Sequence record: NC_070650.1
Strand: one strand, 5' to 3'
DNA: 64,000 bases
Position numbers and translations under genes: made by a program. Below, in pieces: positions 14,052 to 34,806 of the stretch. Under the pieces are notes generated by a model, which made no database searches, was not told where the DNA came from, and saw only the letters and a list, made by a program, of their open reading frames with translations. The number at the start of each line of letters is the position of its first letter. Within the stretch, counting starts at the first letter, position 1.

Positions 14052-17000
14052 TTAATTAGTACCGGCCAAACGCAAAACCAAAAACTCCTCCATTCGCATC
14101 ATGTACGTGCCTCTGGTGATGACCACTCTACCATCAGACTCTTCATCTATGGTATCGGCACCATCAATAATCTCAATGATACCCTCAGTCGTTACCGGTA
14201 ATGCACTGGTTTCACCCTCGGCCAGAACCGGAACATACCCACTACTGGTCATCTCGGCGGTCTGAGAAACTTCTTCGTATGTAATCAAACCATATTTAGT
14301 CCAATCCAGGCCTGCAGCCACGATAGCGTCCTTGACATGTTGTGCGATGACCCCCACATGCCAGCGGGCGTTGTCTGCTCCTTTAGTGGCTATGGCGGTT
14401 TTGAGCTGCCATGCACTTAACTCTACCGATTTTACCGCAGTTGCCAATTTCTGAAATTCGACATCAGAAGATATGGTCTTGATATTATCTTTAAAATGTA
14501 CGTCTGAAATAACAGTAACTGCATTTTGGGAATATATATTAGCCGGATACGCCGTTGAACTCCCAAATGAGTAGGTTGTAGAAGTTAGTAGAGTCCCATT
14601 TATGGTTATTCCGCCGGTACCTGTTAAATATAATGTCGAGTTACCTGAAGAACCAATGCCCGCGGATACATTAGTACCGTCGTAATAAAATCTCAGTTGC
14701 TTTGTTCCGCTAGTGCCGCCGAACCCGGTTCTAAGATCCCCACCGGTTGGCCCCATCCAGCCATCAGAACTAAACGAGTTGCTGGTGCCGGTTAGGGCGC
14801 TTGATTTCCCCGTTTTTACGGAATAACTACGGGTTGTGGATGCGGTCAATGTACCACCAACCTCCCCCAATACTCCCTTCAAAACATATTGCCTTGATAA
14901 GGTGCCGTCAGTATTACTCACTCTCCTGATGATATTTATTAACCCTGTACTACCACCCCCAGAATTTGCGGTAATGTAAATTGGCATACCGGAAAAGACA
15001 TAAGGTAGATACTCAGAAGCAACACTGACCGTTGTCCAACTATTGGCTGAATCTACCGAGTCAATGGTCAAGGAAAAGGTAGCTCCAGCCATTCCAGCCC
15101 CCCAGGAACACCCACCAGTGACTGTCCTTGGTTCAAAACCGCTACCGAAAGACCCAGACATGTCGGAATAACTTGATGGGTCGGTAAGGGATGAATGATT
15201 GTACGGAACAAATGGAGCCACAAGGTCGCCAGGCTTAAATATCCCACCGCCAATTTCTTGAGAATAGTAAGCCCCAGAGTCCGTACTGCTGGCCGACATG
15301 GTCCCCCAAACACGGTCTAATTGAGATTTTGGTGTGTATTCAGATAACCTAGGGGGAAATATCGGAACACCCCCCACGAATGCCTGAATTGCTTTTAATA
15401 TAATCGGTGCATCCGATGTTACGGTAATTTTTAGCTTACCGGCCGCTGAAGAAACCAAACGCCCATCAAGAGATCTGGGGTTTACATAAGGCACAAGTGC
15501 CGCTTTATACCCATTACCGTAGTCAAACAGGCTAACACCGTTAGTTGAATATAGGTTTATGGAGCTGTCGTCACTGGTATTTATATTGTCCGATAAACCA
15601 ACCAGTATTTTGCGGTGGTCGTAATTTCCTGTGAGGTCTTTATACCAGACAACTATATTGCTTTGGTGTGACGGTGATTTCAATGGAAAAAGTAGGACAC
15701 CAGTATTAACTGAAAGACCATATGGTGAAAGAAACTCATTTCCTTCCAACGTATCACGCAATGAATCTACGTCTGGGACGGAACCGGAATAATGTATTCC
15801 GTAGGTACCATATTTAAAATCATAGCCACCATTAGGGAACGCCCCATGGTCCACCGTAGGCTGCCCGACTGACCACGTACTTGGTCCGGCAAAATAAGAA
15901 TATGCCGTTTCCCAACCAGCACGTACGTATTTACCCGTAGCATCATAGCTCCCAAAAAATGATTCTTCGAAAGCAACTAACGGGAATCCTTTCGAGTTGC
16001 TAAGATAATAACTACCCAGTGAACTAATGAATAGCCCGGTACCCCGATAGCTGCCGCTATTTGATGGCGTAGATATGGTCCATCCTGGTCCCGTAGCATT
16101 TTCATAATACATCCCAATAAATGCCGCACCTCTGGCGCTATCTTTAATGAAGCCTTTTATTGGTCCAGCGGCCATGGTATTTGCTTCCACAACACCGCTG
16201 GTAAAAACAACCCCAGCCCCGCTATTTTCGACGAAATAATTAAATTGACTACCATCTGGACTTGATGACCAATCGGAGTATGTACCAAATTTACATTTGT
16301 CAAATTTACCCCAATTGCTAACTGTCCTTAAATGAAGATAACGACAACCATACGAGGTAACATCAATTTCATGAACCCCCTCATACGAACCGGTACTTGC
16401 TGAGGATACTTCCGGTACTATAGTGCCGGTTATTTTGTTACCCAGATTATCATAATAGTAACCCGACGTTGTCCTTAAATATTGTCGACCTACCGCGAAG
16501 TCTTGAATCCAAGTCCCTGTAATCGATGAGTTTTCCATGTTGTACGTCATGATACCGGTGCCGGTATTGCAGGCATCATTGCTTTTTGTTGTTTTATGGT
16601 CCCCGTAAAATTTACCGCCCACTACGTGAAAGTCAGACAACGTCATATTGCCGTATGACGCCGACCCAGAGTATAAATCAGATATTTTTTGTACGTCTTC
16701 GATTCCACGCTCAATTGCGTTCATCCAGACACCAGTAACGCTATGTTTGTTACTTGGGCTTGGCCGAACGTAAATGGATGCCTGTTGGAAATTGAGTTTT
16801 AATCTAGAAAATGCTTTTATCGACAACTTGCCCACCCGCAGGGGGTAATCTGAGGGAACCGTTATTTCTAGGTAAGACGATAGGTCATCCTCACTTTTCA
16901 TGGTCTTAACTAACGTAGATATTCCATATAGAACCTCCCCCACACAAATAAAATCTTCTGTCTCATCATCGACGGTAGAACCAGAAGCTATGGCTTTTAA

Positions 17001-17603
17001 CCCATTACTGCGGGCATTAACGACATCCCCCGATTTTACCGACAAAACATATTCATGACCCGCGGCATCGTATATCTTGGCCACTTTAGGAATATGAGTT
17101 CCAGCCTTTGATTGATTGACTTCACCGGTTGGATACCACACCCCATCACCACCATCGTTAGCCGTATAAAAACCACGGCTACGAATTTCAGCATGGACGG
17201 TCGATAAATTAAAGATGTTAATGGTAGAATCAACCCAAAAACCAAGACCGTATACGAGTGTCGCACCCTCTTCACTTGAACGGAGGTTTTCGCGAAGCAC
17301 CGAATCATTGCTGTATGCCCAAGCTCCAGATCCGATGCCTCCGGTGGTGTCCGGAGTGCTTCCAGAAGGTACTGTTTTTGGGTAGGTGCCAGTCCAAACT
17401 AGGCGTTGCCCACCATAAACAATCTCTTCTTTTATAGATGTAATGGTAAAACCAACATCAAAAGATTTGCTGGCAGTCAGGAAATTCGTCATTGGGATCT
17501 GATAATTACTCCCATCCTCACTATACAGCAACGCCCCGGTGTTATAACCCAACCCGTAGGTCGGCAGGTCACCCAGGCGCTTTGCGATTACTCTACTGGT
17601 CAT
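14052..17603 (-). CDS. RBP1: tailspike/tail fibre, 1183 aa, with C-terminal peptidase S74-type intramolecular chaperone
   Basis: Shared anchor KRLGDLPTY; tailspike N-domain motif WTGTYPKTVPSGSTPDTTGGIGSGAW; beta-helix-like body; SDVHFKDNIK...HVGVIAQ chaperone; start moved to 17603 (GAGGT RBS). Confidence 0.88.
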   Translation of the reverse strand: MTSRVIAKRLGDLPTYGLGYNTGALLYSEDGSNYQIPMTNFLTASKSFDVGFTITSIKEEIVYGGQRLVWTGTYPKTVPSGSTPDTTGGIGSGAWAYSNDSVLRENLRSSEEGATLVYGLGFWVDSTINIFNLSTVHAEIRSRGFYTANDGGDGVWYPTGEVNQSKAGTHIPKVAKIYDAAGHEYVLSVKSGDVVNARSNGLKAIASGSTVDDETEDFICVGEVLYGISTLVKTMKSEDDLSSYLEITVPSDYPLRVGKLSIKAFSRLKLNFQQASIYVRPSPSNKHSVTGVWMNAIERGIEDVQKISDLYSGSASYGNMTLSDFHVVGGKFYGDHKTTKSNDACNTGTGIMTYNMENSSITGTWIQDFAVGRQYLRTTSGYYYDNLGNKITGTIVPEVSSASTGSYEGVHEIDVTSYGCRYLHLRTVSNWGKFDKCKFGTYSDWSSSPDGSQFNYFVENSGAGVVFTSGVVEANTMAAGPIKGFIKDSARGAAFIGMYYENATGPGWTISTPSNSGSYRGTGLFISSLGSYYLSNSKGFPLVAFEESFFGSYDATGKYVRAGWETAYSYFAGPSTWSVGQPTVDHGAFPNGGYDFKYGTYGIHYSGSVPDVDSLRDTLEGNEFLSPYGLSVNTGVLLFPLKSPSHQSNIVVWYKDLTGNYDHRKILVGLSDNINTSDDSSINLYSTNGVSLFDYGNGYKAALVPYVNPRSLDGRLVSSAAGKLKITVTSDAPIILKAIQAFVGGVPIFPPRLSEYTPKSQLDRVWGTMSASSTDSGAYYSQEIGGGIFKPGDLVAPFVPYNHSSLTDPSSYSDMSGSFGSGFEPRTVTGGCSWGAGMAGATFSLTIDSVDSANSWTTVSVASEYLPYVFSGMPIYITANSGGGSTGLINIIRRVSNTDGTLSRQYVLKGVLGEVGGTLTASTTRSYSVKTGKSSALTGTSNSFSSDGWMGPTGGDLRTGFGGTSGTKQLRFYYDGTNVSAGIGSSGNSTLYLTGTGGITINGTLLTSTTYSFGSSTAYPANIYSQNAVTVISDVHFKDNIKTISSDVEFQKLATAVKSVELSAWQLKTAIATKGADNARWHVGVIAQHVKDAIVAAGLDWTKYGLITYEEVSQTAEMTSSGYVPVLAEGETSALPVTTEGIIEIIDGADTIDEESDGRVVITRGTYMMRMEEFLVLRLAGTN

Positions 17604-17627: not shown

Positions 17628-17659
17628 TCTTGTAGAAAATGATAAGCATAAAATGAGGC
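17628..17659 (-). repeat. 32-bp perfect inverted repeat, copy 1 (upstream of RBP1)
   Basis: Reverse complement GCCTCATTTTATGCTTATCATTTTCTACAAGA is identical to 26812-26843. Confidence 0.95.
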
Positions 17660-17721
17660 CAACCTTCAATCTGATAAAAAACCTTCTTTATCGTATGCAC
17701 TTTTATAAAGGAGGGCACCAC

Positions 17722-18285
17722 ATGGGCTTTACCCCTAATTTCACCCTGTCCTCATATTACGTGGTTAATATCGGACTGCCATCTTCAGAATTAGTATTTG
17801 GGTTAATTAACCACGATAACCATTCTACTTTTACTGCCGACGATGTGTTTTTTGGCGTACCTACAAGTACGGCACCGGGCAGTTTAAGAAACTCACAAAT
17901 AACGCTTTATCGCCAACCACCCTACGACTATGATTCGATGGTGGTAACTTACGATAGGCTAGACCTCGATGAGGCGTTAGAAAAACACCTACCTATTATT
18001 TTGTCCCTCGAAGAAACGGATCTTAACCTCACCGATCTCATCGCTTATTTTAATGATACTTATAACCTGTCTTTAAGTGATGGTGAAGTTGTGGGGGGGC
18101 TTATTGATACGGTTGCAGACACAAATCCGTTGACTATCTCTGATTCCAGTTTGGCGTGGCGCGGTACGATAGATTTCACGGCACTTGCTTTAGGTCACTC
18201 CCTAATGGTTGACGACACCGGAGAATACATCACGGTCGGAAATGGTCTCTTATTGGAAATCACGCCACCACCAACAAGTGAGTAA
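17722..18285 (+). CDS. Adaptor-like paralog A1 (probable tailspike attachment protein), 187 aa
   Basis: Family motifs YxV(N/D)xxLPSxELVxGLINxDN, YDRL, SSLAWxG; start moved to ATG 17722 (GGAGGG RBS). Confidence 0.75.
   Translation: MGFTPNFTLSSYYVVNIGLPSSELVFGLINHDNHSTFTADDVFFGVPTSTAPGSLRNSQITLYRQPPYDYDSMVVTYDRLDLDEALEKHLPIILSLEETDLNLTDLIAYFNDTYNLSLSDGEVVGGLIDTVADTNPLTISDSSLAWRGTIDFTALALGHSLMVDDTGEYITVGNGLLLEITPPPTSE
18133..18159 (+). repeat. 27-bp perfect direct repeat, copy 1 (inside A1)
   Basis: ACTATCTCTGATTCCAGTTTGGCGTGG is identical to 20459-20485. Confidence 0.95.
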
Positions 18286-18291
18286 AATAAC

Positions 18292-20067
18292 ATGGCACAG
18301 ACAGTTGCGAAAAAAGGCCTTGCCGCCCTCCCGGATTTAGGGAGTGTTATGGGTGAAAATGGTTACCTTCATTATAATGAAGATGGGGTGGACTATCGTT
18401 TTCCCGTAGCACTTTTAAGTCGAATTTCCGTACTTGCCACCGCTACCGGCGCAAAAAGTATTGGACTTGATTTAACGACCGTTTGGAATGTTCTTTCTGG
18501 ACGTACCAGAAACTTTTTCGAATTTTTAAGTGACGATAAAATTGATTCAGTCAAATCCGGCGAAGACGTGGATATCACCACAGAACTTCAAGCCGCTATG
18601 GATGCCAACTGCGCCATCAAACTTCCCGACGGTAGCTATTATGTTACTCAGGCGATTGTCACTTCAGTGAGTTCTAGTTTGATTGGTGATGGCCCTAGAA
18701 ACTGCGTGATTGATAACCGCGGCATCGACCATCTCTTTAAATTCCCCTCCGGGTATAATCGTGGTTGGAAGGTGTGGTGTGGATTTAAAGTTAAATCCAG
18801 TAATCAGGCCGCCCTTAAAAAATATGCATTTTATTTCATGGGTTCGGCAACGACCGGGTACTTGGATTATGCCGCATCCCAGTGGTTTCAGCTGATTGAA
18901 TTCGACGGAACCGGCATGGGCGGTGGGTGGTATCTCCAGGATTGTTTCCGGGTCACCATCCGCGATTGCGGAGCATCCGGCCATGGAAACCCATTCTACA
19001 TTGCTGGGTCTGTGGTGCAGCTTACCGTAGATAACTATGTTAACAATGGCGATAGCGCACCATCAATGGATGTCGGGTCATATGGCGTGTATATGGCCAA
19101 TAAAAGCTACACCGATGGTAACGGAACTAAAACACCAGAAGGGGTGAACTTCACCCATTGTAAATTTGTACGTCAAGCTATCGGCGCTACGGCGGTTGGT
19201 TTGTTCGTCAATTTCTCTAAGTGTGAGTTTGATTACTGCTGGCAATACGGTGGGTATTACGGTGGTGGTAGTCAAGTAACATTCGACATGTGCTATGTTG
19301 GGGTGCAAGCAAATAGGCCAAATAACTTTGTTGGGTTTATGGTGCCAGCACAAGCTTCCGGTGTTGCTGAAAAAGTTGTTATCCATAAATGCACCGTCAA
19401 CATGCAGACGAACACCAATACCAACGCCGCGATTTACACGTCCAAAGGCATTCAGGTCGGTAACTCAACAGTTAACCCTATTGCAACAGATATCGTCAGC
19501 AATACCTTCAGGGGCGTTGGTTTTGATATAGGAATCCACGTCGTTCGCGGGCTCGGAATTAAAGTTGATGCGAATGCCTTCCTTTATACCGGGGTTAACA
19601 TCCAGGTGGACGAATGTCGTACCCTCTGGATGACCAACAACAGCACCAGCCTTGACGGCTCTAATAATCCAAGAGGCACTTACAATCTGACGACTGCAGA
19701 TACGTCGGCAGAATGGTTTGTTGTGGGTAATGATGGTACCTTCGTTACGAAAAGTATCGTCAACCCGGCGCGATGCATTATCATGAACCGATACTGGACC
19801 CCGTACGTGACCAGAACATCCTGGTCGCCTTCAGCAGCAATTAATGTCAGTATTGCCGCCGGTGCTACGTATGGGTTCACCATCGCCGCCACCGCAGATT
19901 CTACGGCAACGTATAGCTTAGCTGGGGTAAACGTATCCGGGTTACAGTGGAGTATCGTTTATTCGAACGCTGCTGCCGTCAGGGTCACGTTCTATAACCC
20001 AACGGCATCTGCTATTACTCTTAACACTTCCCTGAGAGTGAAAACAGAGTGGCCACCTGTGGGGTGA
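18292..20067 (+). CDS. RBP2: tailspike/putative polysaccharide depolymerase, 591 aa
   Basis: Anchor KKGLAALPDL; DITTELQAAMDA...LPDGSYYV...LIGDG beta-helix entry; parallel beta-helix-like repeats. Confidence 0.85.
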   Translation: MAQTVAKKGLAALPDLGSVMGENGYLHYNEDGVDYRFPVALLSRISVLATATGAKSIGLDLTTVWNVLSGRTRNFFEFLSDDKIDSVKSGEDVDITTELQAAMDANCAIKLPDGSYYVTQAIVTSVSSSLIGDGPRNCVIDNRGIDHLFKFPSGYNRGWKVWCGFKVKSSNQAALKKYAFYFMGSATTGYLDYAASQWFQLIEFDGTGMGGGWYLQDCFRVTIRDCGASGHGNPFYIAGSVVQLTVDNYVNNGDSAPSMDVGSYGVYMANKSYTDGNGTKTPEGVNFTHCKFVRQAIGATAVGLFVNFSKCEFDYCWQYGGYYGGGSQVTFDMCYVGVQANRPNNFVGFMVPAQASGVAEKVVIHKCTVNMQTNTNTNAAIYTSKGIQVGNSTVNPIATDIVSNTFRGVGFDIGIHVVRGLGIKVDANAFLYTGVNIQVDECRTLWMTNNSTSLDGSNNPRGTYNLTTADTSAEWFVVGNDGTFVTKSIVNPARCIIMNRYWTPYVTRTSWSPSAAINVSIAAGATYGFTIAATADSTATYSLAGVNVSGLQWSIVYSNAAAVRVTFYNPTASAITLNTSLRVKTEWPPVG

Positions 20068-20071
20068 TATA

Positions 20072-20593
20072 ATGGCAACTTACGTTCCAGATATTTCATT
20101 GGCTTCTGATGAGTTGGTATACCAACTCATCAATAACGACAACGGTACTTATTATGACGCAGCCCATTTAACGTTGGGCACGCCGTCAGTTAACACCACT
20201 GATTATCTAGATAAAAATACACGCATTACTGTCTCTCATCCGAAATACGGCACAATAGATGGCGCACTTCTTTATTACAATCGAATGAATATTCAGCAAG
20301 TGTTTGATAACACTTTTCCGTTATTTGTTTGTTTGAATGGAGAAAATGACGCTAACGCTTTGGGTGCATATTTTCAATCAACCTATGGCGTGGGTCTGGG
20401 TACCTCCGATATATCCTCGATGGTGATTGCAAACACTACCAATACAGAGCTGGTTTTCACTATCTCTGATTCCAGTTTGGCGTGGTATGGACAAACCCCA
20501 ATGATGGTGTTGAGTAAAAGCAAATATTTTTACGGTACTCCGGATACTTTGGGGTATTATGTTTTATCTGATGGTAGTCTATTGACTGCTTAG
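20072..20593 (+). CDS. Adaptor-like paralog A2, 173 aa
   Basis: DISLASDELVYQLINNDN, YYNRM, SDSSLAWYG. Confidence 0.75.
   Translation: MATYVPDISLASDELVYQLINNDNGTYYDAAHLTLGTPSVNTTDYLDKNTRITVSHPKYGTIDGALLYYNRMNIQQVFDNTFPLFVCLNGENDANALGAYFQSTYGVGLGTSDISSMVIANTTNTELVFTISDSSLAWYGQTPMMVLSKSKYFYGTPDTLGYYVLSDGSLLTA
20459..20485 (+). repeat. 27-bp perfect direct repeat, copy 2 (inside A2)
   Basis: Identical to 18133-18159; both encode TISDSSLAW. Confidence 0.95.
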
Positions 20594-20604
20594 CGAGGGC
20601 TATC

Positions 20605-21270
20605 ATGGCGGGATTTTACATCGTTGATTTGTCCTTGCCATCTGACGAGATGGTATTAGGATTAATCAATAATGACAATGATCTAGAGTTGAGGATGGAT
20701 GAGGTTAATTTGGGGGAAGCCCAGGTTAATACTGACGTCATACGCCATCCCCGAGATACTACCATGCTTGTAACCAATGGAAAATACGCCAGAGATACAT
20801 TGCGAGTCTATTATGACCGCCTTAGTATCGAGGAAGTTATTTCCATGAAATACCCCATCATTGTTCGCGGCGTGGAAGATGGGAACGTGTCCGACTTATT
20901 GACCTACGTCAATTCAGAGTACGGATTGGGTTTGGTCCCGGCGGATATTGTCGATGCGGCATTAACTGACTTGACTGAAGAAATATCAAGCGCTGAGTTG
21001 GATATGCAAACCACCAACCGTGCGTGGTTGGGTTCGGTGCCGATTCTTATTCTCGGTGAAGGGATGTCGGTGCTACGTCAAGAAGACGATGACAGTATAC
21101 TGCTGGTATATGACGAGGATGATAGTTATGTGGCTATTGGTAGTCGGGCGTTCGCCATAGCCGATATGGTTACTTTAGGTGACGGGCAATCGGTACTAGT
21201 CACTCAAGCACAAAACCCCATTACTTCCACTGCCGGAGAATACTATTTGCTCCGCGGTAAGACATCATAA
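20605..21270 (+). CDS. Adaptor-like paralog A3, 221 aa
   Basis: YIVDLSLPSDEMVLGLINNDN, YYDRL, NRAWLG; acidic C-terminal extension. Confidence 0.75.
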   Translation: MAGFYIVDLSLPSDEMVLGLINNDNDLELRMDEVNLGEAQVNTDVIRHPRDTTMLVTNGKYARDTLRVYYDRLSIEEVISMKYPIIVRGVEDGNVSDLLTYVNSEYGLGLVPADIVDAALTDLTEEISSAELDMQTTNRAWLGSVPILILGEGMSVLRQEDDDSILLVYDEDDSYVAIGSRAFAIADMVTLGDGQSVLVTQAQNPITSTAGEYYLLRGKTS

Positions 21271-21282
21271 AGGAGAGCCGCT

Positions 21283-23028
21283 ATGGCGCAGACGCCCGTA
21301 ACAAAAACATTAACGGATTTGCCAGTCTATGCCGATACTGGATATGCCGGACATCTACTGTATACGGACAGTAATGTCGAATATCGGCTACCATTAAATC
21401 AAATTGCTTTATTGAAAGACCTACGGTCTACCTCGACAACCATGGGGGTGGATTTAGTTTCTGGATCAAAGAAAGTTTTTCGGGTAACCGATTATGGCGC
21501 GGTAGCTGATTATGTTCGCTCTAGTGGTACCGTTGGAACCAACAGTACGTCTGCTTTCCAGGCGGCGATCGCCGCAGCGCAGGCCGTTAATGGCGTGGTT
21601 TATGTACCCTCAGCGCCACAGGGTTACGCTTATTACATAAACCAGACTTTATATCCAATAATTAGTAGTGGTAGCGGACTTTGGCGCGGAGCCAGTATAC
21701 TTGGTGACGGCCTATACGCCAGTTCAATTTATTGTGATTGTGGGGTTAATCCCGGGATACATGTATTGGGTACTTCTGGGTGGCCCTCAAATATTAATAT
21801 TTCGGGCATTTCTTTATATAGCCATATCAAATATACTGGGATTGGTATCAAAGAGCAAGGGGTATGCATATATTCGGTGCATGACGTTGGGATTTATGAA
21901 TTTGATACTAACTTATACATCAGTAATGGGTCGGCTGCCGGTATTTTCTCTGAATTTATTAACCATGAAAGATTGTGGCTTAAAGATGGTAATACTAACA
22001 TTAAATTTAGCCGCGATGGTGGCGATTCTTCTTTTCATGGAATTAATTTCAACCATTGTGTGTTAAATAACATTTCTGGTCAAACCGGAATAAACATTTC
22101 TTCAGGTTGTGTTGTTTATAACTCAGATTGGAAACAACTAACTTTATTTGGTAATTCATCAGTTAATTGGATCGTCAATAACGGTTCTAGGAACGGGTTT
22201 GAAACCCTGTTTTTTGAAGGCGATGGTATTATAACCAATAACGGTAGTTGGTATACCGGTGGAACCTGGAGAATACAAAATAGCACCGGAGTGTGGACGG
22301 ATACCTCTACAGTCCCATTTACCACCGAAACATATATAACCCCCCAAACCCCCACTGATTCAAATTTTTCTTCCGTTGGGTTTACTTCAATATCCGCCCC
22401 AAACGTACCGTCCACATCGCAGACTTATCGAGGTATGGTTAGGCTGAGAGGAAATAATTCGGAAGGGATGGGTATTATTGGGTATGATTCGGGTACGTTT
22501 GAACGGCAAGGATTGGCATTATTAAGTGCTAGTGCGGGCGATACCTTTAAAGATTTGGTGATGCGGTCGTTATGGCATTTAAACGGCATAACTTCATTCA
22601 GACCCAGTTTCGGATTATCTTATGGCTCTTCCGGTACCGCCCAATTAAGCATTAATTCTACTGGTCGAGCATCTGGGGTTATGGGTAGGACAACCACTGG
22701 GACTATAACGGCAAACGCTTCATCGCAAACCATAACAACGACATCATTTTATTTTCCCGAATCAGCATCGCCATCATTGGTGTCTTTAAAATGTATGGGA
22801 CCATCCAATCAATTAGTGTGGGCTGGTTTGTACGTAGGGGCGTCATCACCAATTGGCGGCACCACAATGGTGTCCTTGGGAGTACCAGTAAACGTTGTCG
22901 GTTCCGGGGTTACCTATACCCCACCTACGGCATTAACGGTTGATTCGTCAGGAAACATCTCATTTACATTAACTACGTCGGTAGACATCACATATCGTAT
23001 AAACATTATTGGTTTGGGAGTTTATTAA
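21283..23028 (+). CDS. RBP3: tailspike/putative depolymerase, 581 aa
   Basis: Anchor KTLTDLPVY; FRVTDYGAVAD...SAFQAAIAAA...VVYVP pectate-lyase-3-like start. Confidence 0.88.
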   Translation: MAQTPVTKTLTDLPVYADTGYAGHLLYTDSNVEYRLPLNQIALLKDLRSTSTTMGVDLVSGSKKVFRVTDYGAVADYVRSSGTVGTNSTSAFQAAIAAAQAVNGVVYVPSAPQGYAYYINQTLYPIISSGSGLWRGASILGDGLYASSIYCDCGVNPGIHVLGTSGWPSNINISGISLYSHIKYTGIGIKEQGVCIYSVHDVGIYEFDTNLYISNGSAAGIFSEFINHERLWLKDGNTNIKFSRDGGDSSFHGINFNHCVLNNISGQTGINISSGCVVYNSDWKQLTLFGNSSVNWIVNNGSRNGFETLFFEGDGIITNNGSWYTGGTWRIQNSTGVWTDTSTVPFTTETYITPQTPTDSNFSSVGFTSISAPNVPSTSQTYRGMVRLRGNNSEGMGIIGYDSGTFERQGLALLSASAGDTFKDLVMRSLWHLNGITSFRPSFGLSYGSSGTAQLSINSTGRASGVMGRTTTGTITANASSQTITTTSFYFPESASPSLVSLKCMGPSNQLVWAGLYVGASSPIGGTTMVSLGVPVNVVGSGVTYTPPTALTVDSSGNISFTLTTSVDITYRINIIGLGVY

Positions 23029-23030
23029 TT

Positions 23031-23309
23031 ATGGTTATTTCTGAGTATACGGCCGAAAATGGGGTAGTATTATCTGCGGCAGCATTTATTTTATCAAACG
23101 CAACCATACACTCCCATACGGTTACGGTGGACTCCACCGTAACCGAGAAAAAAGATATGGAATGTATTTTTTGTATCTATGCGTCCGAGGAAGCATACAC
23201 ATCAAAGAAACCATATTTTGAACAATTGCAATTAATTACCTCTTACGATCCAAAATTACTTCTTGAAGACCAGGCATATCAGGCATTAAAATTAGAATTG
23301 GGTATATAG
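23031..23309 (+). CDS. Small protein after RBP3 (possible fibre assembly factor), 92 aa
   Basis: 2 nt after the RBP3 stop and followed by a terminator. Confidence 0.65.
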   Translation: MVISEYTAENGVVLSAAAFILSNATIHSHTVTVDSTVTEKKDMECIFCIYASEEAYTSKKPYFEQLQLITSYDPKLLLEDQAYQALKLELGI

Positions 23310-23313
23310 TCGG

Positions 23314-23350
23314 CATAGAGGGAGGGCGAAAGCCCTCCCAAATATGTTGT
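23314..23350 (+). terminator. Terminator hairpin followed by TATG
   Basis: CATAGA-GGGAGGGC-gaaa-GCCCTCCC-AAATATGTTGT; near-identical copies at 26589 and 52235. Confidence 0.8.
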
Positions 23351-23366
23351 CTGTATTGTAGGTATG

Positions 23367-23558
23367 TTATTTAGAGATAAAGTCAAACTCTACCCACCCC
23401 CACCCAATAATACCGCAATCCTTAGCATTAAAAACATCGCTTAAACGTGACGTCGGGGTTCTGGTAACTAGAGCGGCATTTTGCGTGGTAAACGGCACCA
23501 TGGTTGCGCCTTCGTTTGAACTCGGGTTTGAAAGACACTCATCTAGAATCGGCCCATT
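23367..23558 (-). pseudogene. Inverted tailspike gene fragment
   Basis: Minus-strand frame reads LSNPSSNEGATMVPFTTQNAALVTRTPTSRLSDVFNAKDCGIIG, like the anchor/beta-helix junction of tailspikes (cf. RBP1 LRSSEEGATLV); no anchor, no catalytic body. Confidence 0.65.
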
Positions 23559-23565
23559 TTATGCT
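23555..23565 (+). promoter_or_regulatory. CATTTTATGCT late-promoter-like motif upstream of RBP4
   Basis: Same core as the 32-bp repeat; the G of TATG lies 29 nt before the ATG, as for RBP5. Confidence 0.6.
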
Positions 23566-23591
23566 GATACAACTTTACTTAGGGGCCTGCT

Positions 23592-26054
23592 ATGGCAACG
23601 TTACCGTCTTTGAAAAAACTTTCGGATTTACCGACTTACAGCAATTCATCACCCAACTCTGGAACGATGCTATATACCGAAGGTGGGGTTGATTACAAGT
23701 TACCAATAAACGCGGTAACACTGACCTCGGATCTCGCGTCGACAAATTCAGGAAAAGGTGCGGCATTAGTTGGATTAGAGCAGGGTAGCAATGTGCAATC
23801 GGCTCTACGGGGGTATATTAACGCCGCAGCATTTGGTTATGTTGCCGATTATAACCCAACAACCAATACCGGTACGGATAACACCATAGCCCTCAGGGCC
23901 GCCGCCACCTATTGTTTACAATATGGAATTAGGAAACTGGTCATTCCGCCGGGAATGGGGTTAATTTCCGACTATATCCCAATAGATGTGGGTACTGTTG
24001 GAGAAGCAGTGGCTGACAGATTTAAAGGCTGCCAGGATGGTTTCCATATCCAGGGAGCCGGAATGTATTCGAGTTTATTGGTTTTTGATGCTCCAGATGC
24101 AGATACCCCAGCGATAAAAGCAACTGGAGATTGGGGGACCCACACGGCGCGCGCAATCAGTGATTTAGCGATCGTCCCCCGTACTACCGCCGCGTATAAC
24201 GTAGATACGCTAGGTCAAGGCATCCAATTTATTGGCGGGTGTTTCATCCCAATCAGAAACGTGGTGATTGGTAGATTCCATAAAGGGATTTGTTTTTGGA
24301 ATAAAAACAAAGGTGTTAACGACACCGCAAATACATTCACTGCCGGGGATTTTACAGAGTTTATTCGGGGCAACAATATACGCATATTCAACTGTGATAT
24401 CGGTATCGATTTCATGGTTACTTTGGGCAACAATTCATTTCACGGCATTAACTTTACCCAAACCCAAGTGCAGATTAGAAAATATGGCGGTATTGGGGTT
24501 CGTTTTTATGATGATGGTTCAAGGGCCGCTATCGTCACACCTTCAAGCAATTACCAATTCATTGCTAACGTGTACAATGCTAAATTAGATATAAATCTAT
24601 TTGGTGATGACTCATCTACGTGCTATGGGCTCTATTTAAGCGGCGCCCAGGGTAGGGGGATGTCGGGAGACATTACTTGCGAAGGGGCCATGACCCTCAA
24701 AACAAACAGTTTTGAATGGTATCAGAGTTTCGGTAGCCTACACTCCATATCTGCCATAAATCTTGAAATTGGAGCTACTGATACTTCAACCAGACCTGTA
24801 GCATTTATGTTTTCTAATGCGGCATATCCCCAAACTTACTTTGATGGCAGTGATCCTACTTTATTAAATACGTCATACCCCCGCCAGTTTGATGGAAATA
24901 ATCACGGCAATACCGGTATGGATTTATTAAATATTCGCGGGGCGCAATCTGGAAGTATCTGGTCCCAGGTCGCAAGCAACGTGTCGGTAGGGTGGATTTT
25001 TTCGACGCGCACCACTGGTGGAAGCCGGCCAGCCCAGCGCACCGTCTGGCAATTTTCTTATGATGGTACTCGCATATCTTCAGCCGGTACGTCAGTTGGA
25101 CTGTACAATTCAACGGTGGGTCTTGACCTAACCGCTGCAGCATTAGTCCCTTCTGGTAATAATACCTTGAATATTGGTTCGGCATCGTATCGATTCAACA
25201 ATGGTTATTTTAATGGTTGGAATATAGGTGCTAGTGGTATTGTTCCTACTACTGATGTGAGTTTTAACGTTGGTAGCTCTACTTTCCGAGTTAACCGGTC
25301 TTATGTTGCCTCGCGATATTACACTTCGACTGTATTTGATTCATCGGGAGCTGGTTCTCCGGAAGGAGTGGTTGCGGCAGCAATCGGTTCTACTTATCGC
25401 AGGACAGATGGTGGTGTAAGTACATCGTTCTACGTGAAGGAATCGGGTACCGGCACTTCTGGATGGGTATCTACCGGCTCAGTTAGGCCGTACGTTTCAG
25501 GTATGTTCGTAAGTCCAGGAAATATAGTGTTATCCGGAAACTACCTATATCGGTATCTGGGTACCGCTGGAACAATCAGTACTGCCCCGGTTCCAGGTAC
25601 GCTGTGGAACTTAATGACGTCAGGGGCTTCATGTAAGCTTAGAGCCACAACGACTCAAACAATCGCCACGGGAGTCAATACGGCCCTAACTTGGGCCTCA
25701 GCCACCACCGAATATAATAGTAGCAGTATTTATACGGTCGCTACTGCTGGAATAACCGTCCCGGTTGCCGGGATTTATCGTATTGCCGGTAGGGTGGCTT
25801 TTGCATCCAACAACACCGGTACCCGTTCTGCAGGACTGTTCGTTAACGGCACTTACTACGCAGGATCACAGGCCAGGTTCGTCGCCAAATCCGGCGGGTA
25901 TGCAACTACCGCAGATTACAATGATACGTTATCTCTCGCGGCAGGTTCAGTTATCACGCTATCTGGGTTCCAAGATTCAGGGGGTAGCCTAGATACTGTC
26001 GCTACAGCACCTGATGTATCCTTCCTGACAATCAGTTTGGTAAGTTACGTTTAA
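23592..26054 (+). CDS. RBP4: tailspike/putative depolymerase, 820 aa, with extra C-terminal domains
   Basis: Anchor KKLSDLPTY; NTIALRAAA...LVIPPG; GSPEGVVAAAIGSTYRRTDGG...YVKESGTG motif; beta-sandwich-like C-terminus. Confidence 0.88.
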   Translation: MATLPSLKKLSDLPTYSNSSPNSGTMLYTEGGVDYKLPINAVTLTSDLASTNSGKGAALVGLEQGSNVQSALRGYINAAAFGYVADYNPTTNTGTDNTIALRAAATYCLQYGIRKLVIPPGMGLISDYIPIDVGTVGEAVADRFKGCQDGFHIQGAGMYSSLLVFDAPDADTPAIKATGDWGTHTARAISDLAIVPRTTAAYNVDTLGQGIQFIGGCFIPIRNVVIGRFHKGICFWNKNKGVNDTANTFTAGDFTEFIRGNNIRIFNCDIGIDFMVTLGNNSFHGINFTQTQVQIRKYGGIGVRFYDDGSRAAIVTPSSNYQFIANVYNAKLDINLFGDDSSTCYGLYLSGAQGRGMSGDITCEGAMTLKTNSFEWYQSFGSLHSISAINLEIGATDTSTRPVAFMFSNAAYPQTYFDGSDPTLLNTSYPRQFDGNNHGNTGMDLLNIRGAQSGSIWSQVASNVSVGWIFSTRTTGGSRPAQRTVWQFSYDGTRISSAGTSVGLYNSTVGLDLTAAALVPSGNNTLNIGSASYRFNNGYFNGWNIGASGIVPTTDVSFNVGSSTFRVNRSYVASRYYTSTVFDSSGAGSPEGVVAAAIGSTYRRTDGGVSTSFYVKESGTGTSGWVSTGSVRPYVSGMFVSPGNIVLSGNYLYRYLGTAGTISTAPVPGTLWNLMTSGASCKLRATTTQTIATGVNTALTWASATTEYNSSSIYTVATAGITVPVAGIYRIAGRVAFASNNTGTRSAGLFVNGTYYAGSQARFVAKSGGYATTADYNDTLSLAAGSVITLSGFQDSGGSLDTVATAPDVSFLTISLVSYV

Positions 26055-26063
26055 GGAGTTACC

Positions 26064-26582
26064 ATGCCAGCAAGTATGTATGTAGTGGATACGTCCCTAC
26101 CCTCTGTTGATTTGGTCTACGGGCTTATCAACAATGATAACAATACGGTCTATAGTAAATCTACGCTGAATCTGGCCACGCCGGAGACCAACACCAACCC
26201 AGCAATCGACCGCAACAGTAAAATCCTGGCTTCGAACATCAAATACAGTAACAACACACTGATGTTGTATTACGATAGACTGGATATTGCTGATGTATTG
26301 CGCATGGAATTACCTATCATTTTGTCGAATGTAACCGAAACCACGGTAGACCAGATGATGTGGTTTTTTAATTCCACGTACAAAATGGGGTTGACTAAAG
26401 CCGAAATCTCTGCATCGGTCGTTGACCTAACTGGCAATACAACTACGTGGACAATTGCGGATAGCTCGATGGCATGGGTGGGAAATCTACCATTAACCAT
26501 ATTGCCTACGGGGTATGGTCTACTGGTTGATGAAACAGACAACCAATTACTGGATGAAGATGGGTCATATTTGATTTTATAA
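26064..26582 (+). CDS. Adaptor-like paralog A4, 172 aa
   Basis: YVVDTSLPSVDLVYGLINNDN, YYDRL, DSSMAWVG. Confidence 0.75.
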   Translation: MPASMYVVDTSLPSVDLVYGLINNDNNTVYSKSTLNLATPETNTNPAIDRNSKILASNIKYSNNTLMLYYDRLDIADVLRMELPIILSNVTETTVDQMMWFFNSTYKMGLTKAEISASVVDLTGNTTTWTIADSSMAWVGNLPLTILPTGYGLLVDETDNQLLDEDGSYLIL

Positions 26583-26588
26583 ATACGG

Positions 26589-26627
26589 CATAAAAGGGAG
26601 GGCTTTCGCCCTCCCAATATGTTGTCT
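26589..26627 (+). terminator. Terminator hairpin followed by TATG
   Basis: GGGAGGGC-tttc-GCCCTCCC-AATATGTTGTC. Confidence 0.8.
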
Positions 26628-26811
26628 AACTATTAAATGAAACCACATAATCGAAATCAGCGTAGAGCGTAAAATCAAAAGTACCCGTGGGATGTTGGTA
26701 TGTGGCACCTGAAGAATCAGACAATATCGTCAATATATTGGTTTCGGAAGTCACTAATGACATCAAAGTTTTTCCAGTCAATTCATGATTTTTTGATGTG
26801 GTGGCTTAGTC

Positions 26812-26843
26812 GCCTCATTTTATGCTTATCATTTTCTACAAGA
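26812..26843 (+). repeat. 32-bp perfect inverted repeat, copy 2 (upstream of RBP5; contains TATG)
   Basis: GCCTCATTTTATGCTTATCATTTTCTACAAGA is the reverse complement of 17628-17659. Confidence 0.95.
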
Positions 26844-26852
26844 GGGGCTATC

Positions 26853-28523
26853 ATGGCCAACAGAGCGATTACGAAGAAAATTAGTGCTTTGCCGACCTAC
26901 GCACTGAACAACAATAACGGCAATTTACTGTATAGTGAAGGTGGTGCAAATTACCAATTTCCACTAAGTAATATTGCCCTTCTTTCAAACCTGGGTTCTA
27001 GCGAAACGGGTTTGGGTGCATCTCTGAGCATGACTGAGCAGGGGATCACAGTACAGGATGCCCTGCGCTATCTGACAATTTCGGCAACCGGATTGGCAGC
27101 TACAGATGAGGCCATAAAAAACGCTGCAATAGCTAAATGTGAATTACTGGGAATGGATTTAGTTATTAACCCAGGCAGCTATAAATTCATCACGCCACTG
27201 GTCTGGAACGCTAAGCGATACAGCATTCGCGGTACTGGTAATACGATTATAGATTTCACTGGGCTTCCTGCTGGCTCCTACGCTATTACAGTCAAGCCGG
27301 AGGCGACAAGTGCTGGTACAATCTGGAATGCCGCTGCGCACTCGTTATCAGGACTGATATTTAAAGGCGCGTCCGGCATTCATGGAATTAAAATTTCACA
27401 GGAGATAAACTTCGATTCCCCACAAATTACGGTTAGGGATTGTTTATTCAACGAGTTTGATGACCATGTTACGTTTGGTGATAACGAATGGTGTTGCTCA
27501 TTTGAGCGAGTAAAGTTTCGGGCAAATACCAATGGCAGCAGCAGATTTGTTGTCATTGATAAGGCATATAACGGGTGTGAAAATCAGAGATTTTTGGGGT
27601 GTAACTTTAATGGCAGTAATAGCGGGATGGGGATAAAACATATTGCGGGGTCGTGTGAACTGACATTTGACGGATGCTCATTCGACTACTGTCATCAGGT
27701 CTTATCGTCAGTTGGGGCAGGAGCGCGCGGAGTATGGCGTTTTAATGATACGCATTTTGAAGATGATGGCACTATGCGTCAGTTCGATATCAGCTCAGGT
27801 AACGCAACGTTTTATGTGGATTTAAACCAATGCGACTGGGCGTATATAACTAAAGATGAAAGCGGAAATAACCGTATACCAACATCAATCGGAGCGTTTG
27901 AAAGCACTAACCAGAAATCCACGCTACGGCTCTCTGGCTGCAAATTTCCCATTTATGATGAAGTATCCGATCGGTCAAAATCATATTTATGGGTGATAAA
28001 TAATAGTGCAGTACGCATTCTTGCTAATGGTAATGTTATTGAGCACTTAACCAATCAGTATTTCAATATGTTTTCATTTGGCCTGAACAAGTTTCTTGCA
28101 CTAACGGACGCTAATCGTAACAGCCCTGCACTGGTTACTAATGGTCTGGGCTCGATTACATACGATACCAGCGACCTGCCAGCGAACAGGATTAACGATA
28201 ATACCTGGTGTATTACTGGCATTATTTCCGGAAACGTCATGATACCGATTGACCCCAGCAACAGAGAAATAAATCTGTCAGGTAACCTCAAACGTACATC
28301 AAGCGAATACTATATCGATGTCCGTTTCTTTACTGCGTTAAATGTCCAGTTAAGTGCAATTTCGCTTGGTGTTCCTGGCAATATTAATACGTGGGTTCAT
28401 TTCGGACAGACAATCAGAGCACCGACAGGCGCGGCATTTATCCGAGTTGGCTGGGCGTATGCCGCAGCACCGTCAACAACTGATACGTTACGGCTGAATA
28501 GCATTTGCGTGGAGCAATACTAA
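26853..28523 (+). CDS. RBP5: tailspike/putative depolymerase, 556 aa
   Basis: Anchor KKISALPTY; DEAIKNAAIA...LVINPGSYK beta-helix entry; start moved to ATG 26853 (GAGGGG RBS). Confidence 0.87.
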   Translation: MANRAITKKISALPTYALNNNNGNLLYSEGGANYQFPLSNIALLSNLGSSETGLGASLSMTEQGITVQDALRYLTISATGLAATDEAIKNAAIAKCELLGMDLVINPGSYKFITPLVWNAKRYSIRGTGNTIIDFTGLPAGSYAITVKPEATSAGTIWNAAAHSLSGLIFKGASGIHGIKISQEINFDSPQITVRDCLFNEFDDHVTFGDNEWCCSFERVKFRANTNGSSRFVVIDKAYNGCENQRFLGCNFNGSNSGMGIKHIAGSCELTFDGCSFDYCHQVLSSVGAGARGVWRFNDTHFEDDGTMRQFDISSGNATFYVDLNQCDWAYITKDESGNNRIPTSIGAFESTNQKSTLRLSGCKFPIYDEVSDRSKSYLWVINNSAVRILANGNVIEHLTNQYFNMFSFGLNKFLALTDANRNSPALVTNGLGSITYDTSDLPANRINDNTWCITGIISGNVMIPIDPSNREINLSGNLKRTSSEYYIDVRFFTALNVQLSAISLGVPGNINTWVHFGQTIRAPTGAAFIRVGWAYAAAPSTTDTLRLNSICVEQY

Positions 28524-28681: not shown

Positions 28682-28740
28682 AATAGCCCAGACATTCAAT
28701 TTCTAAATAGTATGCCTGTTCTAACCCATAAACAACATAT

Positions 28741-28772
28741 GAGGCAGGGCTTTCGCCCTGCCTCTTTTATTT
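28741..28772 (+). terminator. Intrinsic terminator
   Basis: GAGGCAGGGC-tttc-GCCCTGCCTC-TTTTATTT. Confidence 0.85.
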
Positions 28773-33711: not shown

Positions 33712-34806
33712 ATGAAGAAAATAACAAAACAATGTAGACTATATCCAAATAGAGAGATGAAGGAAGCCTTAGATAAGTACTTTGGGTGTTGTCGTTTTGT
33801 TTGGAATTCTTTATTAGAAGAAACCTACCATTACGCTGGCATCATAAACCAACCTTATCTCAACTCACTTTTAACCGAATTGAAAACCAAACATGATTTT
33901 TTAAAGGACTGCTCTTCCGTTGCTTTGCAGCAGGTAACCTTCAGCCTAGCATCAGCTTGGAGTGCATTTTTTAATAACGTAGCCCAAAAACCCAGATTTA
34001 AATCAAGAAAGATGGGGCATAATAGCTTTAAATTAGTGGGCGATTGTGTCAATGGGGTTGGCACAAAGTACGTGCATTTTCCAAAAATAGGGGAATGTAA
34101 ATATAAAAACAGTTGGGGAAATTTATCTAAAATATCCAGTTATGTAGTCTCTAAGAAAAGAAATGGCAAGTATTATATTTCATTTTTGGTTGAAGTAGAA
34201 CTAAAACCAAAAACACAATCTGGGATGGTGGGTATAGATGTAGGGTTATCTTATTTTGCAACGTGTGCCGATAACCAAGGCAATCATTGGAAAATAAATA
34301 ATCCAAAGTTTTTACTCAAACGACAGAGGGCGTATAAGCGAGCTAGTAGGCGTTTATCCAGGAAAGTATTGGGTTCTGCTAATCGGAATAAATCACGAAA
34401 CCGTTTAGCCGCCCTAGTAGGAAAAACGGTAAATCAAAGAAATGACTATTTGCATAAGGTATCCACGGAACTTGTGAGCAAATACCAACACATAGTCATA
34501 GAAGATTTAAACATCCGCGGGCTTTTAAAAAATAATCGATTGGCCAAACATATTTCCGATACCGGTTGGGGGGAATTCTTTAGGCAATTACACTACAAAG
34601 CCCTAATGTACAATACGCCAATCCATATTATCAAAGCCCCTAGGTGGTACCCATCTACTCAAATTTGTGCCAACTGCAATTCCAAAAGAGAAGTGCGGTT
34701 ACACTTAAATGAACGTTCTTGGACCTGTAACTACTGTGGGGCATCCCATGATCGTGATATTAATGCAGCTCAGAACTTATTGAAGCAAGTTCTGAGCAGT
34801 CGTTAG
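33712..34806 (+). CDS. tnpB: TnpB RNA-guided nuclease (IS200/IS605/IS607-type), 364 aa
   Basis: HTH RLYPN...FGCCRFVWN; RuvC-I VGIDVG; RuvC-II IVIEDL; Zn finger CANC...CNYC; RuvC-III DRDINAA. Confidence 0.95.
   Translation: MKKITKQCRLYPNREMKEALDKYFGCCRFVWNSLLEETYHYAGIINQPYLNSLLTELKTKHDFLKDCSSVALQQVTFSLASAWSAFFNNVAQKPRFKSRKMGHNSFKLVGDCVNGVGTKYVHFPKIGECKYKNSWGNLSKISSYVVSKKRNGKYYISFLVEVELKPKTQSGMVGIDVGLSYFATCADNQGNHWKINNPKFLLKRQRAYKRASRRLSRKVLGSANRNKSRNRLAALVGKTVNQRNDYLHKVSTELVSKYQHIVIEDLNIRGLLKNNRLAKHISDTGWGEFFRQLHYKALMYNTPIHIIKAPRWYPSTQICANCNSKREVRLHLNERSWTCNYCGASHDRDINAAQNLLKQVLSSR

Follow-up and report, generated by a model that had tools for sequence, protein, structure and literature searches.

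The tailspike locus of Klebsiella phage vB_KvM-Eowyn (NC_070650/LR881104; genome 265,389 bp) contains a perfect 32-bp inverted repeat whose two arms stand at the heads of two outward-facing tailspike genes, gp225 (RBP1) and gp235 (RBP5; RBP, receptor-binding protein). The window analysed here is the 64,000-nucleotide stretch that covers bases 186001-250000 of this genome, and positions are those of the window. The repeat is probably a twin late-promoter block belonging to frozen cassettes, the remains of a Din-type switch that is still carried by the sister phages KpGz_1 and KpHz_2. A more particular version of this account stands at about even chances: the locus would be the frozen remnant of a two-circuit, inside-out switch of the Gin type, live in the sister phages, in which the tailspike bodies stay in place and a portable 32-bp late promoter flips between them together with an anchor exon. 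The first-pass annotation of the sequence had proposed that the repeat pair could mediate inversion of the DNA between its arms. That proposal is not supported; the locus does appear to descend from an inversion system, but one with other sites, other segments and an enzyme that has since been lost.

Because genes for the nuclear shell protein, the PhuZ tubulin and the split RNA polymerase are all annotated in its record, Eowyn is read, on those annotations, as a jumbo phage of the phiKZ-like, nucleus-forming kind. The + strand carries more than 90% of its open reading frames (ORFs), and gp225 is among its few minus-strand genes. The locus was compared among the complete genomes of Eowyn, KpGz_1 and KpHz_2 and two short metagenome contigs, L026 and L027. 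These two contigs were the relevant ones from a metagenome scan that also gave three unrelated matches (L023-L025), in which no repeat, sites or invertase were found. KpGz_1 and KpHz_2, recorded as 'Serratia' phages and both isolated on K. pneumoniae, are the only other complete genomes that share the DNA of the locus, and searches of IMG/VR with the repeat, the invertase protein and the adaptor protein gave no further relatives.

The two arms, here called P1 (before gp225) and P5 (before gp235; Table 1), have no mismatches over their 32 nt, where no matches are expected (100 shuffles), and the 32-mer has only these two copies in the whole genome when up to three mismatches are allowed. They are separated by 9152 nt that carry RBP2-4 and the adaptor genes, so that the first-pass description of the repeat and of the block of about 9.15 kb within it is accurate. 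The genome has exactly three copies of an 11-nt core, CATTTTATGCT, one in each arm and one, as had also been noticed, at 23555-23565 before gp233 (RBP4). This third occurrence lies in a diverged copy, P4, which matches the 32-mer at 19 of 32 positions and is identical to it across the core, from -8 to +3 when the G of the TATG is numbered +1. The TATG lies at 17650-17647 (-), 26821-26824 (+) and 23560-23563 (+). Its G is 29 nt from the ATG in both gp235 (26824 to 26853) and gp233 (23563 to 23592), the shared distance that had been pointed out, and 44 nt from the ATG of gp225 (17647 to 17603).

The identity between the arms ends abruptly. The gp225 and gp235 cassettes are 58.7% identical over their initial 150 coding nt and 50% identical over the 60 nt upstream of the repeat; the short blocks said to be common to the two anchor-coding regions are present. 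Since the flanking cassette DNA is so diverged, the 32/32 identity is, on these alignments, a sharp-edged island within otherwise old paralogues, far above chance. When eight copies from the three genomes and the two metagenome contigs are aligned, variation is confined to positions 1 and 25, and the flanks diverge directly beyond positions 1 and 32. At position 25 the two copies are C/C in Eowyn, T/T in KpGz_1 and C/T in KpHz_2, and the agreement within a genome hints at occasional exchange between both copies. In KpGz_1 and KpHz_2 the gp225 homologue is headed by the minus copy and the gp235 homologue by the plus copy, with the arms 12.7 and 15.8 kb apart, and the block between the arms is colinear in Eowyn, KpGz_1, KpHz_2 and contig L026.

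Table 1. Features of the Eowyn tailspike locus, in window coordinates
Feature	Position	Strand	Details
gp225 / RBP1 tailspike	14052..17603	-	anchor A1 17297-17603; body below 17271
Orphan TC-class gix-like site in gp225	17271..17296	-	26 bp; encodes ..NLRSS..
Left arm, copy P1 of the 32-bp block	17628..17659	-	heads tailspike gp225 (RBP1); predicted start G17647
Block between the arms	17660..26811	+	adaptors gp226, gp228, gp229, gp234; tailspikes gp227, gp230, gp233; gp231
Putative deletion scar adjoining P1	17660..17683		begins at the first base beyond the repeat
Probable antisense fossil, annotated gp232	23367..23536	-	decayed TG-class site and ~52 codons of body, then stop
P4, diverged third copy of the block	23551..23582	+	heads tailspike gp233 (RBP4); predicted start G23563
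Remnant of the 3' end of the invertase gene	26756..26788	+	~32 nt; reads ..FPVNS, then stop
Right arm, copy P5 of the 32-bp block	26812..26843	+	heads tailspike gp235 (RBP5); predicted start G26824
gp235 / RBP5 tailspike	26853..28523	+	anchor A5 26853-26979
Drifted TG-class gix-like site in gp235	26980..27005	+	encodes ..SNLGSS..

Evidence for a switch comes from the sister phages. Directly upstream of the plus copy, both KpGz_1 and KpHz_2 encode a 183-amino-acid (aa) protein with Resolvase and HTH_7 domains. Its best solved relative is Mu Gin (E 2e-44, full length) and its nearest phage homologues are the Pin-like invertases of lambdoid phages (~62% identity), so that both genomes possess the serine invertase expected of a Din-family inversion system. 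The sites are present as well. Gix-like sequences of 26 bp, with a 12-2-12 layout, lie in the anchor-coding DNA, four in KpGz_1 and six in KpHz_2, and fall into two classes by their central dinucleotide: TC (two in KpGz_1, three in KpHz_2) and TG (again two and three). Inverted pairs with the same dinucleotide exist in both phages. The TC sites flank a 0.4-kb piece made up of anchor A1, a 24-nt leader, the 32-bp block and 10 further nt, and the TG sites flank a 0.8-kb piece that holds the invertase gene, the 32-bp block and anchor A5. Each promoterless tailspike body in these phages starts at a 26-bp site, and when crossover at the central dinucleotide is simulated, each of the six alternative bodies becomes part of an open fusion frame, of 551-711 aa; one of the bodies has K1-lyase and beta-helix domains. 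The bodies themselves appear to have moved within the array, because a 92%-identical promoterless body lies on opposite sides of the cassette in the two phages: in KpGz_1, B512 (L021 8408-9940 +) is on the right of the A1 cassette, and in KpHz_2, B474 (L022 6463-7997 +) is on the left of the gp225-type body.

Substitutions at positions 106 and 114 of Gin yield Fis-independence. In an alignment, the invertase of the sister phages (P0001) has R and Y where Gin has H106 and M114, a difference that could matter for an enzyme acting inside the phage nucleus.

Eowyn has neither the serine invertase nor the paired sites of such a system. No invertase was found in its genome by tblastn, nor any match to PF00239 or PF00589, and the first-pass remark that the window contains no site-specific recombinase thus extends to the entire genome, for serine and tyrosine recombinases alike. 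Parts of the system are nevertheless recognizable. The TC site in gp225 (Pfam domains Tail_spike_N and Peptidase_S74) is identical to the sites of the relatives, but its inverted partner is gone; where Eowyn has the scar beside P1, the relatives have that partner, along with a + strand body of ~510 aa that lacks a promoter and with a hairpin/TTTTATGCC unit. In gp235 the TG site has two synonymous changes compared with the sites of the relatives, a drift that fits relaxed constraint on the DNA and not on the protein. A further TG site (23511-23536), with five changes and a centre of CG, begins the antisense frame annotated as gp232, in which the body portion resembles KpGz_1 B514, a promoterless tailspike body. 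gp232 is probably not a real gene but an antisense remnant of a tailspike body. At the right-hand cassette, Eowyn has 127 nt of unmatched filler (26629-26755) where KpHz_2 has the antisense body with its site and the whole of the invertase gene except the last ~32 nt. An ORF spanning 26700-28523 carries the gp235 frame upstream over the invertase remnant and the promoter block; its start at 26700 is spurious, and the true start of gp235 is at 26853, as annotated.

Both surviving Eowyn sites remain in frame at the junction of anchor and body, as relics, and the sole alternative body gives 98 aa. The 26-bp sites can be taken as the points of body exchange because homology to the relatives breaks there: at the DNA level it stops at 17265/6 in gp225 and at 27011 in gp235, 5-6 nt past the sites, and protein identity ends at aa 113-118 in gp225 and at aa 68 in gp235. 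The earlier suggestion that a promoter-plus-anchor cassette is reused with different bodies is borne out to this extent, since the repeat and the N-terminal anchor are kept in the three complete genomes and the bodies diverge from a fixed point.

The 32-bp block is best read as the cassette's own phiKZ-type late promoter, with a TATG and a T-rich stretch, together with the first 20 nt of the leader, its activity being predicted from sequence. In phiKZ the late promoter is T(-3)ATG(+1), with the G as +1, and DNA downstream of this core is also required (PMC4666361), in agreement with the identification of TATG as the late-promoter core in the first-pass annotation. With its G as +1, the block runs from -12 to +20, and such a TATG lies upstream of the virion genes gp225, gp235 and gp233. 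The promoter reading is preferred because the motif fits, because the 118-nt divergent intergenic region of gp225 has a single minus-strand TATG, which is that of P1, because the non-coding DNA of the relatives' 0.4-kb cassette consists of the 32-bp block and 34 nt only, and because host sigma-70 promoters could be rejected, their matches occurring at shuffle frequency and their -10 hexamers abutting or overlapping start codons. The 11-nt core was rejected as a general late promoter, being confined to the three spike genes. Words of the TTTATGCC type occur 10 times upstream of Eowyn genes where 1.1 are expected; TTTATGCC is a general upstream word that mostly follows directly after GC hairpins. 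In Eowyn a weak hairpin (26800-26814) precedes P5, and the repeat supplies its T-rich tail. The plus copy of the relatives is likewise preceded by a hairpin, weakened in Eowyn, whose 3' arm is formed by the first bases of the block. The minus copy retains these 3'-arm bases without the 5' arm, as expected if it were a transplanted piece.

A history that would unite these features starts from an ancestor in which, as in the sister phages, the 32-bp block was the built-in promoter of two small invertible cassettes. One, of ~0.4 kb, would have the order site, anchor A1, promoter, site; the other, of ~0.8 kb, the order site, invertase, promoter, anchor A5, site. A Gin/Pin-like serine invertase would flip each cassette at its in-frame 26-bp gix-like sites. 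Each flip would place one of two or three promoterless bodies, all facing outward, behind the promoter and anchor, and because one circuit uses TC and the other TG as central dinucleotide, the two should remain separate. The invertase, the partner sites and the alternative bodies would then have disappeared from Eowyn, leaving the cassettes frozen, A1 leftward and A5 rightward, and the repeat would now serve only as the promoter of gp225 and gp235. The shared promoter would appear as an inverted repeat with arms 9.15 kb apart because the cassettes were frozen in opposite orientations.

Several observations weigh against this history. No record has a cassette in the flipped state, so switch activity in the relatives is something that we infer from the arrangement of their genes and sites. 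The assignment of promoter function comes from motif, position and elimination, and part of the motif may be the tail of a terminator rather than a promoter, because the unit of hairpin plus TTTATGCC is found on both strands. The core alone seems to be enough for a spike promoter, and promoter function alone does not seem to explain the 32/32 identity. Because P4 matches at just 19 of the 32 positions, full identity between P1 and P5 needs transplantation, gene conversion or an extra shared regulatory need; it is likely to have been kept by transplantation or gene conversion of a discrete block, with selection acting downstream of +1. A final difficulty is a joint in contig L027 that an invertase model would not predict. 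L026 and L027 come from the same metagenome project and have private anchor single-nucleotide polymorphisms in common. L026 is Eowyn-like; in L027 (OGVK01003465.1, 1-300) the A1 cassette has its promoter side fused to the terminator of the gp222 homologue of the left flank; compared with Eowyn, the relative orientation of the two is reversed, and the junction contains no gix-like site. Judged by its sequence, this is a natural rearrangement at the outer edge of the block.

Two other records came from the invertase cluster search. In the JGI contig Ga0490018_002396 (L030, 2700-2760) the block ends after 21 nt and is followed by the middle of a gp239-like spike body, and an intact invertase gene lies upstream of the shortened block. 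This contig is either a deletion variant or a chimeric assembly and is uninformative for orientation. The other record (P0005) is a prophage in a bacterial chromosome and was set aside as irrelevant.

The block could be regulatory without being a promoter. It might be an operator or a leader, acting through the binding of a regulator or through translational control, with transcription starting elsewhere, for example at the TATG at 26617-26620 beside a hairpin. Such a role would suit the conservation of the part beyond the predicted +1, 20 of the 32 nt, which P1 and P5 share and P4 does not, and a further TATG does follow the terminator hairpin upstream of gp235. However, the divergent region before gp225 offers no other TATG, and the relatives' 0.4-kb cassette leaves little non-coding DNA outside the block in which transcription could start. 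The conservation of the downstream part is explained in any case, because the non-virion RNA polymerase (nvRNAP) of phiKZ requires sequence past +1 (PMC4666361). An operator or leader is thus an unlikely substitute for a late promoter.

Inversion of the 9.15-kb block itself, the arms being recombination sites for site-specific or homologous exchange, is much less likely again. The repeat is perfect, unique and of sufficient length for rare homologous exchange, Eowyn encodes a UvsX-like recombinase, and the position 25 pattern (C/C in Eowyn, T/T in KpGz_1) hints at exchange between copies. But the arms lie upstream of outward-facing genes, so that inverting 17660-26811 would alter no protein and no promoter-gene pairing, and the alignment of the locus places KpGz_1, KpHz_2 and contig L026 all in the Eowyn orientation. 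Eowyn has no site-specific recombinase to act on the arms, the relatives' invertase has its own gix-like sites elsewhere, and the 32-mer is without a 12-2-12 dyad. Inspection led to its rejection as a Fis site or gix-like site; its length does not allow two Fis sites, and by eye it has no convincing match to the 15-bp G...C pattern. Bracketing of a gene block by perfect inverted repeats could also suggest the ends of a mobile element, and a TnpB gene lies 7 kb away; yet there is no transposase between the arms, where only structural genes are found, no target-site duplication is present, the outer flanks differ, and in the relatives the arms are conserved as gene-proximal upstream elements at spacings that differ from that of Eowyn. 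A mobile origin for the 9-kb block is barely credible. The same can be said of a chance match or an assembly artefact, given that shuffles predict zero matches and that two genomes assembled independently contain both copies, as do metagenome contigs.

Some further features of the region were recorded. A recurring intergenic unit consists of a GC hairpin (of the GGGAGGGC-loop-GCCCTCCC type) with near-palindromic arms that give a TATG on both strands (..CATAT / TTTATGCCG..). It is found at 23313-23352, 26589-26628 and 28732-28765 and genome-wide, in either orientation relative to genes, and may be a bidirectional terminator-promoter. Another word, TATATTAC(T), occurs upstream of Eowyn genes 16-17 times against ~0.9 expected; 16 of its 18 intergenic copies are co-oriented with the next gene, and it is a candidate for an element of early or middle promoters. 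Two adaptor genes, gp226 and gp228, otherwise diverged paralogues, have in common a 30-nt block that is 97% identical (18130-18159 and 20456-20485, +). A gene annotated as a transposase (33712-34806, +) is not a site-specific invertase and has no part in the repeat finding.

Frozen cassettes of a Din-type switch resemble several known systems in part. The relatives' invertase of ~183 aa, with its Resolvase and HTH domains, is like those of the Mu G segment (Gin), phage P1 (Cin) and e14 (Pin), being nearest to Gin and Pin. For comparison of sites, Mu gix was read from NC_000929 at the annotated boundaries of the G segment; Mu was used because the annotated IR3 of the phi80 pinL region, tried as a comparator, turned out to be a plain hairpin. 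Mu gix has the same 12-2-12 layout and the same AAACC-NN-GGTT type of core as the relatives' 26-bp sites, and in the tail-fibre switches of the Din family the sites are placed in frame where the constant part of the receptor-binding protein meets the variable part, as they are in the relatives. The Min system of p15B is a multiple-inversion system, which KpHz_2, with several sites and bodies, resembles. In the Hin system of Salmonella, the H segment is an invertible promoter with the recombinase gene inside the segment, and the relatives' invertible piece similarly carries a promoter and an invertase gene; unlike the on/off control of an operon by Hin, however, a flip in the relatives would also move the 5' coding part and so create protein fusions.

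The differences from the Mu Gin type are considerable. The host of the switch is a lytic-type, nucleus-forming, phiKZ-like jumbo phage rather than a temperate phage or plasmid. The arrangement is inside-out, since it is the promoter and anchor (and, in one cassette, the invertase) that would flip, between variable bodies that do not move. Two circuits exist, each with its own central dinucleotide, and in Eowyn the system is dead, lacking both the invertase and any valid pair of sites. [quoted passage not shown] As to the promoter, phiKZ late promoters served by the nvRNAP, such as P119L, share with the 32-bp block the TATG core, a T-rich upstream stretch and the downstream requirement (PMC4666361), but they are little conserved outside the TATG, whereas the block is identical at two paralogous sites and near-invariant across phages. 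The spikes themselves are built like the depolymerase spikes TSP1-4 of CBA120 and the branched spikes of RaK2 and phiK64-1, with shared N-terminal anchor modules and adaptors, and gp225 has the TSP1/Gp66 N-terminal domain. Arrays of the CBA120/RaK2 type are static; the Eowyn lineage, in contrast, would have gained site-specific shuffling of bodies, which Eowyn then lost.

The reading of the repeat as the promoter block of two frozen cassettes explains the orientation of gp225 against the strand bias of the genome and the presence of one identical block upstream of two spike genes. It also corrects the annotation at three places, namely the gp232 fossil, the spurious start at 26700 and the leftover 3' end of the invertase gene. 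KpGz_1 and KpHz_2, in which the switch is apparently complete, and Eowyn, a candidate for phage therapy that is fixed in a single state, form a natural before-and-after pair. The 26-bp sites mark exact natural swap points between anchor and depolymerase body, and the 32-bp block offers a short candidate for a late promoter in phiKZ-like Klebsiella phages. [quoted passage not shown]

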